The notes under the pieces: model-generated | What the model saw: the letters and a program-made list of their open reading frames with translations, nothing else | Told to the model about the DNA's origin: nothing | Databases searched by the model: none | Made by a program: the position numbers and the translations under genes | DNA from: Macrostomum lignano | Lineage: Eukaryota | Direction of reading: 5' to 3' | Length of the DNA: 64,000 nucleotides | NCBI GenBank assembly: GCA_002269645.1 | Contig: NIVC01003097.1 | Span: forward strand, 1 to 64,000 | Part shown: positions 55,889 through 63,312 of the stretch, in pieces | Position numbering within the stretch: the stretch's first letter is position 1 | How the letters are laid out: the number at the start of each line of letters is the position of its first letter

Positions 55889-56175
55889 ATGCCTCTAACA
55901 AACAATACTAGCTCAGTAGTCATTGCTGAAAGCAGCAACTGGAAGCATTACGCCTTAGCCGGCTGGTGCAGTGCAGTGTTCTTAGCCAGCTTCATCTCGA
56001 ACGGGCTAGCCGCCTACAACATCCTGGCCTCGCCATCGTTGCGCAATCCGTCAATGCACGTGCTGTGCTCCGGCTTCGTTGGCAACTGTCTGTGCGTGCT
56101 GTCGGCCGCCTCGCTTAACTTGGCGTCGGCTTGGCTGGCCGGAGAGTGGGCCTTCCACATGGCCTGGTGCTACTG
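55889..56175 (+). CDS. Divergent opsin-like GPCR, exon 1 (N-terminus, TM1, TM2, ECL1)
   Basis: ATG with NNT sequon. SNGL...SLRNPS resembles opsin GN...LRTP; LASAWLAGEWAFHMAWC resembles ASxxxGxWxFGxxGC. Donor TG|gtgaga, phase 2. Confidence 0.75.
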
Positions 56176-57019
56176 GTGAGACTGGGCTGCTCAGGGGGAG
56201 GAGCGGATCTGGTAGCATTAACATTAGCGGTCAACCTCTACTTAACTGTCTTGCAGCAGCGCTGTTGATATCCACTGGATTAGTTGAAAAAAATCTGCAT
56301 TAAAGATGTCGGAATCCAACGCAATTGTGAGACCCCCTGCTGAAAAAATGACATAAAGTCAAAATCTGCAACTCTGAACTAAAAGCACTCGGTTTTGCTT
56401 CATAATCATATATGGAACATTTCAAGCAGCCTGTCACGCAGTTTGAGTCGGTTTGGCTTCTGGAATATTAGGGGGGGGGGGGGGGAGGGGGCAGGCAGAA
56501 AAAGCGGGAATCAATTTCGGCTCTAGTGGAATATACTTCAATAAAAACTGCCGTCTCCTCAGCGATCTCCGGGGAGCCGAAGGGAGCCGGTTAGGCTAGC
56601 TAGAGAGAGAGATATTTGCGGAGGCTGCAAGCCCTACACCAGCCATATTGGTTAGCGGGCTTGTGGTTGAGTGCGTCTAGAAAGCTTCTTCAAGCCAGCG
56701 TAGTTGCCGCAAAGTCCAACTAACATTTGGCAAAGCATAATTTATTTGATTGAAGACGTCGGTCGAGTCTGGACTTGAGTAGACAGCGAGCCAATGATAG
56801 AGCACTCGACGAATTAGTCAACTTCAATCAACTGTCAAACATTTTCAGTTTTGCAACAAGTTAAGCGTATTGTGTAGCGTTAGAGGAAGCTAAATTCAGT
56901 TGATGCTACGAGCTGGTTTACTGACAGACGGCAAAATTTATTCGCTAAAGCATTTGATCAAGTGTAGCGATAGACATCGGACCCGATAAACATCAAAACA
57001 GTCTGCCGGCTTGGGTAAC

Positions 57020-57760
57020 TCTCCCTCTCTCTCTCTCTCTCTCTCTCTCTCTCTCTCTCTCTCTCTCTCTCTCTCACACACACACACACACACATACACA
57101 CAACAAGATCAAAATAGGAAATAAAGAACAAACGTACAGAATCAAAGAGAGTCAGAGAGAATCAGAGAGAGTCAGAGAGAATCGGAGAGAGTCAGAGAGA
57201 ATCGGAGAGAGTCAGAGAGAATCGGAGAGAGTCAGAGAGAATCGGAGAGAGTCAGAGAGAATCGGAGAGAGTCAGAGAGAATCGGAGAGAGTCAGAGAGA
57301 ATCGGAGAGAGTCAGAGAGAATCGGAGAGAGTCAGAGAGAATCGGAGAGAGTCAGAGAGAATCGGAGAGAGTCAGAGAGAATCGGAGAGAGTCAGAGAGA
57401 ATCGGAGAGAGTCAGAGAGAATCGGAGAGAGTCAGAGAGAATCGGAGAGAGTCAGAGAGAATCGGAGAGAGTCAGAGAGAATCGGAGAGAGTCAGAGAGA
57501 ATCGGAGAGAGTCAGAGAGAATCGGAGAGAGTCAGAGAGAATCGGAGAGAGTCAGAGAGAATCGGAGAGAGTCAGAGAGAATCGGAGAGAGTCAGAGAGA
57601 ATCGGAGAGAGTCAGAGAGAATCGGAGAGAGTCAGAGAGAATCGGAGAGAGTCAGAGAGAATCGGAGAGAGTCAGAGAGAATCGGAGAGAGTCAGAGAGA
57701 ATCGGAGAGAGTCAGAGAGAATCGGAGAGAGTCAGAGAGAATCGGAGAGAGTCAGAGAAT
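57020..57760 (-). mobile_element. Second copy of the (CT)n-(CA)n-spacer-20-bp minisatellite cassette
   Basis: Identical spacer CACACAACAAGATCAAAATAGGAAATAAAGAACAAACGTACAG and the same 20-bp unit as 59186-61072. No flanking duplication seen. Confidence 0.65.
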
Positions 57761-57818
57761 CCAAAGAACGAAAGACGAAAACTTTGTCAAACTTTTGCCG
57801 CCCGAAAAATCCAAAAAG

Positions 57819-58155
57819 GTACGTGTTCAGCACCAGCTCCCTGGGCCTGTTCAACATCAACTTACTGACCGGCCTGTCAGCCCTGCGCTGCCGCATGGTG
57901 ACCCGCAACAAGCCGTTTGGCAGAGCGCAAGTCCTGGTCCTCGTCTGTCTCTCCGCCGTGGTTGCCGCAGCCTGGAGCCTTCCGCCGATGTTCGACGTCG
58001 CCGGAGTCCGCCGAGTCGGTCACGTGGCCGCCTGCGATCTGGACTGGGAGGGCAACCGGACCCGCGACAAAGTCTACCTGGGCGGCCTACTGACTGCCGA
58101 GTTTTTGCTGCCCCTGGCTGTCATTGTCGGCTCCTATGTGGCCATCTTTGCGCAC
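57819..58155 (+). CDS. Divergent opsin-like GPCR, exon 2 (TM3-TM5)
   Basis: Acceptor aaaaag|G (phase 2) gives exact C3.25-to-R3.50 spacing. WSLPPMF...AACDLDW...YLGGLLTAEFLLPLAVIVGSY resembles opsin TM4/ECL2/TM5. Donor CAC|gtgagc, phase 0. Confidence 0.8.
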
Positions 58156-61072: not shown

Positions 61073-62299
61073 TGGTAGTTCTACTGTTAATCCGCATATA
61101 GGCCGGCAGCCAGCTTGTTGTCAGGGCTGGCCTTTTTTAAAATGCAATTTCAGACAATAAAAAGCAAGCCGGATTAGGCAAGGCTAGAAAGAGAGACAGG
61201 ATCGGTTTAAATTAAGCGCTGAAGTGAGGCCCGGAATTTCCCTTTCATCCTCATTCAGCTGTAGACAGACAGGCTGGATGCAGTGCGAGTGGGACAAGCA
61301 ACGATTAGAAATCATTGCCTTTTGGTCCAGATTTTTCAATAAAAAATTGTCTGGGCCGCAGCAAATACTGAATAAAATCTGCAACTGGCAGCTGGGAATG
61401 GGAAGAGAATTTCATTTTCAGGAGTCATGTATTATTAGCTGCAAGTCATGCGCAAAGTTTGCTTAAAAAACTGTGAGGACCCTGATAAAAACACTGCTCT
61501 CAGTTTCTACTCCTCGCTACGGTTGCACCTGCAGAAGCCCTCATATAAGTCCTTCCAACCTTACTCATCTATCCTCGTATTTGTATTGGGATGAGTTCTA
61601 TTTTCTATCACATCGTGCATGGAATACTAAACCTAGGACTTACATCCGGATTGGAAACTGTTTGTTGATTTATTCAAATTTTCTGGCCACCTCCTTCTGA
61701 TTTTTTGAGTGAAAGAAAGTCAATTAATCCTTACTGGGTGCAAAAAGATAAACTTTACTGCAGTTTCCAGTCCAGATTCTATGCGTAGAATAAGTGCATG
61801 GATTGCGCTGCAGTTTCCAGTCCAGATACTACACGCAGCATAGACGAATAGTCCATGGTTTTGTAGACGATGAACAGTTTCCAAATCCAAAGCCTGTTAA
61901 TTTGTCGCAAGCCTGGCAAACAGATCAAGGTCTCCAATCATATGGGCTTCCGTGTGTGAAATTGATCTTGTTTTCCCACTGTTTTCTGTCCATCTTTTGC
62001 CTAATTAGCTATGAGCATGAGCAGTCCTTCAGTCATTAGTTTCGAGCAGATGGGGCTCATAGAGTTGGCAAACCGGACTGAAGCCTCAGCCATCATCATT
62101 AGTTATTCTTAATGAACTTTAGGAGAGAATTTATAATACAAGCTAGGAAAAATAACTGAGAATCAGGAATAATGACTCAAAATGGTAAATGATCATTGAG
62201 AATCACAGATACTCACTGTGAATTATTGGTCATCTATGGGAATAATATACTAACATTATTGATCATCAAGAGTGATTGAAAACCTTGGGTGATGATTAA

Positions 62300-63170
62300 T
62301 CCAAGATCATTAGGAGTCACTGAGAATCATTGAGGATCATTAGAGGAGTCACTGGGAATCATTGAGGATCATTAGAGGAGTCACTGAGAATCATTGAGGA
62401 TCATTAGATGAGTCACTGAGAATCATTGAGGATCATTAGAGGAGTCACTGAGAATCATTGAGGATCATTAGAGGAGTCACTGAGAATCATTGAGGATCAT
62501 TAGAGGAGTCACTGAGAATCATTGAGGATCATTAGAGGAGTCACTGAGAATCATTGAGGATCATTAGAGGAGTCACTGGGAATCATTGAGGATCATTAGA
62601 GGAGTCACTGAGAATCATTGAGGATCATTAGAGGAGTCACTGAGAATCATTGAGGATCATTAGAGGAGTCACTGAGAATCATTGAGGATCATTAGAGGAG
62701 TCACTAGAATCATTGAGGATCATTAGAGGAGTCACTGAGAATCATTGAGGATCATTAGAGGAGTCACTGGGAATCATTGAGGATCATTAGAGGAGTCTCT
62801 GAGAATCATTGAGAATCATTAGAGGAGTCAGTGAGAATCATTGAGGATCATTAGAGGAGTCACTAAGAATCATTGCGGATCATTAGAGGAGTCACTGGGA
62901 ATCATTGAGGATCATTAGAGGAGTCTCTGAGAATCATTGAGAATCATTAGAGGAGTCTCTGAGAATCATTGAGAATCATTAGAGGAGTCAGTGAGAATCA
63001 TTGAGGATCATTACCGGTAGGAGTCACTGAGAATCATTGCGGATCATTAGGAATCACTGAGAATCATTGAAGATCATTAACCGTAGGAGTCACTGAGAAT
63101 CATTGAGGATCATTAGGAGTCACTGAGAATCATTGAGGATCATTGAGGATCATTACCCGTAGGAATCACT
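62300..63170. repeat. 32-bp minisatellite (GAGTCACTGAGAATCATTGAGGATCATTAGAG)n
   Basis: Direct inspection. Confidence 0.95.
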
Positions 63171-63218
63171 GAGAGTGAGGATCACAGAATCAAACCGTCG
63201 CCGCTCCCTCCCCCGCAG

Positions 63219-63312
63219 ATCCGCAGACACCGCAGCTCAATCGTGTCAACCTCCAGCGGCAATCAGGCCAGGCGTGATCGCCAGTTCGTCATTCACGTGC
63301 TGGCCATCATCG
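63219..63312 (+). CDS. Divergent opsin-like GPCR, exon 3 (ICL3 and start of TM6); gene continues past the window
   Basis: Strong acceptor ctccctcccccgcag|ATC (phase 0) and donor ATCG|gtgagc. Encodes IRRHRSSIVSTSSGNQARRDRQFVIHVLAII. Confidence 0.7.

Follow-up and report, generated by a model that had tools for sequence, protein, structure and literature searches.

The stretch of DNA analysed here, positions 1 to 64,000 of the Macrostomum contig NIVC01003097.1 (the window, 64,000 nucleotides at its full length), holds part of an opsin gene of a free-living flatworm, namely its first three coding exons out of at least four (Table 1). The spliced exons 1-3 encode 239 amino acids (aa) without a stop, from the first transmembrane helix (TM1) to the start of TM6, which corresponds to about five and a half helices. 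The 239-aa product matched Pfam 7tm_1 with E=6e-15. All five splice sites within the window were canonical GT-AG and no frameshift was found. The exon coordinates, splice sites, phases 2 and 0 and lack of stops given in a preliminary description of this DNA were reproduced by splicing. The gene had also been described as intact, which holds for the three exons seen; the exon encoding TM6 and TM7 is outside the window. No fourth exon (TM6, TM7 and the C-terminus) was detected in the 688 bases 3' of exon 3 (63313-64000), in agreement with the earlier statement that TM7 lies beyond the window. A scan of the upstream region with bacterial promoter and terminator models, which are irrelevant to a eukaryote, gave nothing. 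Residues are numbered throughout as in bovine rhodopsin.

Table 1. Features of the window. TM, transmembrane helix; ICL and ECL, intra- and extracellular loop; ORF, open reading frame; GPCR, G-protein-coupled receptor; MITE, miniature inverted-repeat transposable element.
Feature	Position	Strand	Description
Opsin exon 1	55889-56175	+	from ATG, ends TACTG/GTGAGA, phase 2; N-terminus with NNTS glycosylation sequon, TM1 (N55), ICL1, TM2 (Asn 2.50/83, Asn94), ECL1, Cys110, bases 1-2 of the Trp112 codon
Codon of N83	56084-86	+	
Intron 1	56176-57818	+	phase 2, in codon 112, GT..AG; holds (CT)n, (CA)n and 20-bp satellite
Composite block	56990-57760		in intron 1
Opsin exon 2	57819-58155	+	starts after AAAAAG/G, ends GCGCAC/GTGAGC, phase 0; TM3 (Tyr113, Leu134-Arg135-Cys136), shortened ICL2, TM4, ECL2 beta-hairpin (Val178, Arg179, Arg180, Val181, His183, Cys187, Asp188, Asp190), TM5 (Glu211, Phe212, Pro215, Tyr223)
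Codon of Y113	57820-22	+	
Codons of L134-R135-C136	57883-91	+	
Codon of V181	58015-17	+	
Codon of D188	58036-38	+	
Intron 2	58156-63218	+	phase 0, after bovine codon 229; three satellite arrays and a MITE-like inverted-repeat element
Satellite array	58182-58578		in intron 2
MITE- or foldback-like element	58678-59161		in intron 2; about 480 bp
Composite block	59170-61075		in intron 2
Satellite array	62305-63149		in intron 2
Opsin exon 3	63219-63312	+	starts after CCGCAG/ATC, ends ATCATCG/GTGAGC, phase 1; ICL3 (IRRHRSS...QARRDRQ), start of TM6 (FVIHVLAII and base 1 of the Gly259 codon)
Intron 3, 5' part	63313-64000	+	phase 1, in the Gly259 codon; runs past the window end
FAT-like/protocadherin gene	4683-24955	+	very large; cadherin repeats, EGF and laminin-G domains (Pfam)
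Large ORFs of the FAT-like gene	13905-15725, 18246-20204, 20344-23673, 23453-24955	+	
Second class A GPCR	43645-44484, 38113-38874	-	about 11 kb upstream of the opsin gene
ORF, 1081 aa	28302-31547	+	no Pfam match
ORF with Cys/His pattern	45614-46078	+	no Pfam match
ORF with NAD(P)H-binding domain	47334-47867	+	NAD_binding_10 (Pfam)
Satellite ORFs (examples)	26761-27587, 39904-40458, 47979-48431, 49703-51113, 52140-53020		translated satellites

The sole protein within reach of the window gene in a collection of 5.8 billion sequences was a GPCR-domain protein of M. lignano, 66% identical (BOX15_Mlig015728g1, PAA90994.1; UniProt A0A267GZZ9, A0A1I8H915, A0A1I8J5A0). It is mis-annotated, being publicly designated merely as a hypothetical or GPCR-domain protein, and its models are partial (134, 121 and 251 aa), lacking TM1-TM3 or running into an intron; PAA90994.1, of 251 aa, covers TM4 to the C-terminus. 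A coding sequence of 376 aa was rebuilt from the M. lignano locus (L001). The locus has the same four-exon plan, and its introns are identical in position and phase to those of the window gene, including the lineage-specific intron 1 in codon 112 (phase 2), which is common to both. Intron 3 of L001 is 5.4 kb long and the exon 4 that follows bears CWTPY and Lys296.

The amino acid identity between the window protein and the homologue was 66.5% over 239 aa. The nucleotide identity with L001, 75-77%, was confined to the three exons (exon 1 was 77% identical to L001 8363-8661) and the introns were not conserved; introns and flanks had nothing in common with L001 beyond microsatellites and one repeat element. 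The nonsynonymous (dN) and synonymous (dS) divergences were determined to be 0.24 and 0.85 by the Nei-Gojobori method, and the resulting dN/dS of 0.28 therefore indicates that the gene is under purifying selection. The best conserved regions were TM3 (87%), ECL1 (85%), ICL1 and the ECL2 core VRRVxHVAACDLDWE, and the lowest conservation was found in the N-terminus. With a dS of 0.85, the L001 gene is either the counterpart in a different species, the more probable case as searches with two neighbouring genes of the window gave no close M. lignano protein, or less probably a deep paralogue of the window gene. The last exon of the window gene is outside the window and its introns are swollen with satellites that reach close to the splice sites, as might be seen in a decaying or truncated pseudogene that looks intact over three exons. 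However, the absence of stops and frameshifts, the five canonical splice sites, the dN/dS of 0.28 at this dS and the exon-only conservation make a pseudogene very improbable.

Opsin identity and lineage

To collect the relatives of the gene, a profile built from the window protein and PAA90994.1 was run with HMMER exhaustively against 1.84 billion representative proteins, which resulted in 931 matches. The next match after Macrostomum was a c-type opsin of amphioxus (Branchiostoma) with E=7e-25. Residues were counted on the best 150 of the 931 matches, aligned to the profile. Lys296 was present in about 120 of the 124 proteins covering TM7, Glu181 in 129 and Tyr113 in 103 of the 150, and Cys187 in all of them. 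Each of the 20 matches looked up by name was an opsin, the types being mixed. TM7 of the homologue reads LLMAKSGMAASALAYFAINSEFR, and its Lys was aligned with Lys296 of bovine rhodopsin and cone opsins by both HMMER and MAFFT. The best 24 sequence matches of the homologue in the PDB were all opsins (5.5e-16 to 2.5e-10), ahead of galanin receptor 2. The AlphaFold2 model of the 239-aa window fragment had a pLDDT (predicted local distance difference test) of 90.4 and its top 29 PDB fold matches were opsins, which is supporting evidence only because the input alignment of the model consisted of opsins.

By these sequence comparisons, opsin membership is well supported for the family. The term "opsin-like receptor" of the preliminary description was supported, as the nearest relatives in the protein library are almost all Lys296 opsins and opsins also lead the matches to solved structures, whether compared by sequence or by fold. 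The gene is an unusual member of a known opsin family, not a new receptor class. The 239-aa fragment alone also drew PrRP and NPY receptors among weak PDB matches (E ~1e-5), which would be expected of an ordinary class A receptor of the peptide or amine type with a superficial likeness to opsins. Such a receptor is hardly credible, being already contradicted by the dominance of opsins in every search, the Lys296 of the homologue and the xenopsin introns described below.

The exon structures of several matches were mapped from their genomic loci. The gene of Lingula anatina XP_013397676.1, a sequence that Doering et al. 2020 (PMC7529461) count among the xenopsins, has just two introns, one in phase 0 after CYGNIFHK (codon 229) and the other in phase 1 in LMI[G]CFLASWTPY (codon 259). 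An opsin of Mya arenaria has the same two introns (229/230 phase 0, 259 phase 1) plus others. Introns 2 and 3 of the window gene and of the M. lignano gene are situated at AIFAH/IRRH (229/230, phase 0) and AII[G]AFLLCWTPY (Gly259, phase 1), and are thus the two xenopsin-type introns, exact in position and phase. Exon mapping showed both to be absent from three c-opsin genes and from one r-opsin gene of Mytilus, the latter having no intron in this region. In the c-opsin genes of amphioxus and sea urchin, introns were located at 121 (phase 1), 232/233 (phase 0) and 312/313 (phase 0), and none at 259. None of the c-opsin introns used as a test set (121 phase 1, 232/233 phase 0 and one in or near ECL2) occurs in the window gene, the introns of which are at 112 (phase 2), 229/230 (phase 0) and 259 (phase 1). 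The xenopsin lineage was assigned because gene structure decides where similarity does not, and by its intron positions the window gene probably belongs to this lineage and not to peropsin/RGR. An affinity to peropsin/RGR was also rejected by the search, as such proteins were not among the nearest relatives found. One match named "peropsin" bore c-opsin-like features when mapped.

The canonical xenopsins of Lingula (XP_013397676.1), Maritigrella crozieri (MK598846) and Mya arenaria share with the Macrostomum genes the two introns, Y113, a CWxPY-type TM6 and Lys296, and the Lingula protein also has E211-F212. They differ in having DRY, E181, Y178, NPxxY or DPxxY, and NxQ. The signature of clade A, an NxQ tripeptide and a C-terminal VxPx, was missing in the homologue: its residues 310-312 are N-S-E and its terminus lacks VxPx. 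A closer likeness was found with clade B of the flatworm xenopsins, in which the TM7 Lys is kept, NxQ and VxPx are absent and NPxxY is modified (PMC6805122, PMC7529461). The compared set of polyclad sequences, transcriptome-derived and labelled in the supplement of PMC6805122, comprised Prostheceraeus vittatus B1 (DAB27257.1) and B2 (DAB27258.1), Stylochus ellipticus (DAB27259.1) and others (Rawlinson 2019, Voecking 2017, Doering 2020). Like the Macrostomum genes, these are from flatworm hosts. The combination of Lys296 with an altered NPxxY and tripeptide is present in the homologue as K296, SALAY and NSE. Leu208, Glu211-Phe212, Glu312, a hydrophobic residue at 292 and the loss of Asn302-Pro303 are common to the Macrostomum proteins and clade B, L208, E211 and E312 of the homologue being found in all or most clade B sequences; Leu134-Arg135 is shared with clade B2 only. 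From the introns and these residues, we consider it fairly probable that the window gene is a macrostomid opsin of the xenopsin lineage, most like clade B with its degenerate G-protein-activation motifs and further lacking Glu181.

Several observations weigh against this assignment. The best single match is the amphioxus c-opsin, and similarity does not separate xenopsins from c-opsins: in phmmer the Branchiostoma c-type opsin reached 106 bits vs 96 bits for P0007 (Mya arenaria), the best xenopsin-structured match. The hidden Markov models (HMMs) of the groups scored 170 bits (xenopsin) vs 160 bits (c-opsin), and 115 bits were obtained with the ASO-type model (anthozoan-specific opsins). Neighbour-joining trees were calculated with 200-300 bootstraps and with human ADRB2 and the neighbouring GPCR of the window as outgroups. 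The Macrostomum pair was placed beside P. vittatus xenopsin B1/B2 within the xenopsins, but the bootstrap was <=11% for any placement, whether or not the labelled xenopsin panel was included, and long-branch attraction could account for the grouping with clade B. Clade B also retains Asp/Glu181 and Tyr178, whereas the Macrostomum proteins have Val181, Val178 and Asp188; most clade B members have an ECL2 shorter by two residues, and their identity to the Macrostomum proteins is about 20-25%. In addition, Lys296 was read in the homologue only, site 296 of the window gene being located beyond the window.

An opsin outside the xenopsin lineage, either a very divergent c-opsin or an unplaced old lineage with convergent intron matches, would accord with the top non-Macrostomum match (E=7e-25), the phmmer scores, the nearly equal group HMMs and trees without support either way. 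Deuterostome c-opsins (Branchiostoma, bovine rhodopsin) gave the highest single sequence scores and are alike in overall fold. In contrast, they have another intron set and keep E/DRY, NPxxY or NAxxY, NxQ and mostly E181. Two introns of the window gene fall in the same codons and phases as the xenopsin pair, all c-opsin introns are absent, and several derived residues are common with clade B xenopsins. It is very unlikely that two positions among about 1000 sites would match exactly by chance, and we regard a placement outside the xenopsins as quite unlikely.

Counterion sites, retinal pocket and signalling motifs

The alignment with bovine rhodopsin (HMMER, MAFFT) was ungapped in C110-R135 and P170-W191, as had been claimed for TM3 and TM4-ECL2, with a deletion of 3-6 residues in ICL2 between the two stretches. 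The established counterion sites of opsins are 94, 113 and 181 (PMC12401545). No acidic residue was found at any of them in the window protein or the M. lignano protein (N94, Y113, V181), and site 292 of the latter is Leu. Such an acid is normally required of an opsin for absorption in the visible range; it is not strictly a defining trait of opsins. Residue mapping thereby confirmed the earlier report that both Schiff-base counterions are lacking (Tyr113, Val181), and the LRC in place of E/DRY, the Asn at 2.50, Val178 and the Asp188 beside Cys187 were likewise found as described. Y113, L134-R135-C136, V178, V181, D188, D190, E211 and N83 are common to the window gene and the homologue. The changes relative to the usual opsin motifs were D83N, E134L, Y178V, E181V, S186A and W161A, together with NPxxY and NxQ in the homologue, where they are replaced by SALAY and NSE. 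Lys296, CWTPY in TM6, Tyr306 and Leu292 were also read in the homologue only.

Cys110, Cys187, Gly121, Phe212, Pro215, Arg135 and Tyr223 are kept in the window gene, and Phe261, Trp265, Pro267, Tyr268, Ala295, Lys296, Tyr306, Phe313-Arg314 and the C-terminal Cys-Cys in the homologue. The pattern of retained residues is consistent with continued use of a retinal pocket. The alternative is an opsin-derived orphan receptor which has lost retinal binding and acts independently of light, for example in a chemosensory or structural role, an outcome like that of the pseudopsins. The joint losses of D83, E134, Y178, E181, S186, W161, NPxxY and NxQ, the lack of a counterion at the established sites (PMC12401545) and the position of site 296 outside the window would agree with it. 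However, the homologue keeps Lys296, Ala295, Trp265, Tyr268, Phe261, Gly121 and Cys110-Cys187 under purifying selection, and the pocket-lining TM3 and ECL2 are the best conserved parts, so that an orphan receptor appears unlikely. Pseudopsins are opsin-like sequences defined by the absence of the retinal-binding Lys (PMC10097855); the M. lignano homologue has this Lys, and membership in the pseudopsins was rejected.

Near the pocket, conservation of acidic residues was limited to Asp188 and Asp190 in strand beta4 of ECL2 and Glu211 at the ionone end. Asp188 is rare, occurring in 2 of the 149 other matches among the best 150 of 931, and it is invariant in both Macrostomum proteins. It is located within the predicted strand beta4; the hairpin strands of the AlphaFold2 model are residues 159-162 and 167-170, corresponding to 178-181 and 186-189 of bovine rhodopsin. 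By the predicted register of the hairpin, residue 188 would pair with 179 and would therefore point to the same side as the 181/186 pair. In bovine rhodopsin this pair faces the Schiff base.

According to the preferred mechanism, the protein would bind retinal via Lys296 inside the conserved TM3/ECL2 pocket, and the ECL2 carboxylate would be shifted from strand beta3 (site 181) to strand beta4 (Asp188). To judge from the residues, a counterion moved to Asp188 is possible, and is put forward tentatively; a point against it is that Asp188 may simply pair with Arg179. An unprotonated, UV-absorbing (ultraviolet) Schiff base is a somewhat more doubtful candidate, and an anion bound near Arg179/Arg180/His183 would be improbable. 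The remaining probability falls to no retinal binding at all.

The lack of an acid at 94, 113 and 181 has a counterpart in the anthozoan-specific opsins II (ASO-II), such as Antho2a of Acropora tenuis (Sakai 2025, PMC12401545). These are cnidarian opsins which use Cl- with Glu292, whereas the Macrostomum homologue has Leu292, and the coral solution is therefore not directly transferable. The ASO-II members among the matches (Nematostella, Exaiptasia) scored much lower. Membership in ASO-II was rejected due to Leu292 and these weaker matches.

Site 181 was also not acidic in other nearby Lys296 opsins, P0037 (Branchiostoma belcheri XP_019648011.1), P0025, P0035 and P0041, in which it is Phe, Asn, Arg or Lys. 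The ECL2 of the amphioxus protein P0037, THVAA..CSLDW, recalls the HVAACDLDW of Macrostomum; its gene has c-opsin introns.

Repeats and neighbouring features

The same composite block was present in introns 1 and 2 of the opsin gene. Its components are (CT)n, (CA)n, a unique stretch of about 45 bp, CAAGATCAAAATAGGAAATAAAGAACAAACGTACAG, and the 20-bp satellite AGAGAGTCAGAGAGAATCGG, of which 31 copies were counted in the block of intron 1 and 85 in that of intron 2. The block in intron 2 is flanked on both sides by GGTAGTTCTACTGT. This arrangement suggests an inserted or mobilised satellite-bearing element. Two further satellites, with repeat units of 20 bp and 32 bp, occur towards the ends of intron 2. 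One array begins 27 nt past the donor of exon 2 and the other stops about 70 nt before the acceptor of exon 3, so the splicing signals are notably close to long satellite arrays. The MITE- or foldback-like element of intron 2 has terminal inverted repeats of about 80 nt. Its parts are 74% identical to L001 23725-23846 and 24489-24597, downstream of the M. lignano gene, and it is a repeat family common to the window and the M. lignano locus sequence. The tandem-repeat load is extreme in the whole window and many of the long ORFs are translated satellites. The GC content was 50% in the window vs 43% at the M. lignano locus.

Besides the opsin gene, a very large FAT-like/protocadherin gene was located in the window. 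A search with its 1109-aa cadherin exon gave FAT4-like proteins at 25-32% identity only and no close M. lignano match. The second class A GPCR, on the opposite strand, is composed of a TM1-TM5 exon (7tm_1 E=1e-22, with the TM3 Asp and DRF) and a TM6-TM7 exon (NPLFY), and looks amine-receptor-like; the exon search detected no homologue at E<=1e-10. Either a lineage-specific gene or the chance openness of a frame in GC-rich DNA could account for the 1081-aa ORF. The Cys/His pattern of the ORF at 45614-46078 is reminiscent of the zinc-binding tail of non-LTR (long terminal repeat) retrotransposon reverse transcriptases.

Proposed function and significance

Atypical or lost G-protein activation can be argued because of D83N, E134L, the change of NP to SA, Q312E and the short ICL2. 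Coupling would still be possible because Arg135, Tyr223 and Tyr306 are retained. Taken together, signalling is probably weak or atypical, as far as the motifs can tell. The xenopsin of Maritigrella is a demonstrated Gi-coupled pigment (PMC6805122), while clade B has been suggested to act as a photoisomerase or to be unable to activate G proteins (PMC6805122, PMC7529461). By analogy with clade B, a photoisomerase or accessory role would be as likely for the Macrostomum protein as G-protein signalling. RGR, retinochrome and peropsin, retinal-binding opsins with weakened G-protein motifs, offer a possible functional analogy. These proteins use Glu181 as the counterion. An analogy of the photoisomerase type has been proposed for the clade B xenopsins (PMC6805122).

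It is also conceivable, if unlikely, that the protein is a visible-light pigment with an undescribed counterion, either Asp188 on beta4 or an inorganic anion held by Arg179/Arg180/His183. In the first case, Asp188 would be a fourth amino acid counterion site. In the second, anion-dependent tuning would have arisen independently of the coral ASO-II opsins and the vertebrate long-wavelength-sensitive (LWS) opsins.

No xenopsin was found in macrostomids by Rawlinson 2019 (PMC6805122), and only r-opsins and retinochromes were reported from platyhelminth genomes by De Vivo et al. 2023 (PMC10097855). The locus described here and its mis-annotated M. lignano counterpart suggest that the xenopsin lineage is present in macrostomids and has been overlooked. 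The gene would represent a bilaterian opsin without an acid at 94, 113, 181 or 292, a condition so far studied only in coral ASO-II. As M. lignano is tractable, with RNA interference, transgenesis and simple eyes, it would provide a route to the function of the clade B xenopsins and to the life of an opsin without Glu181.

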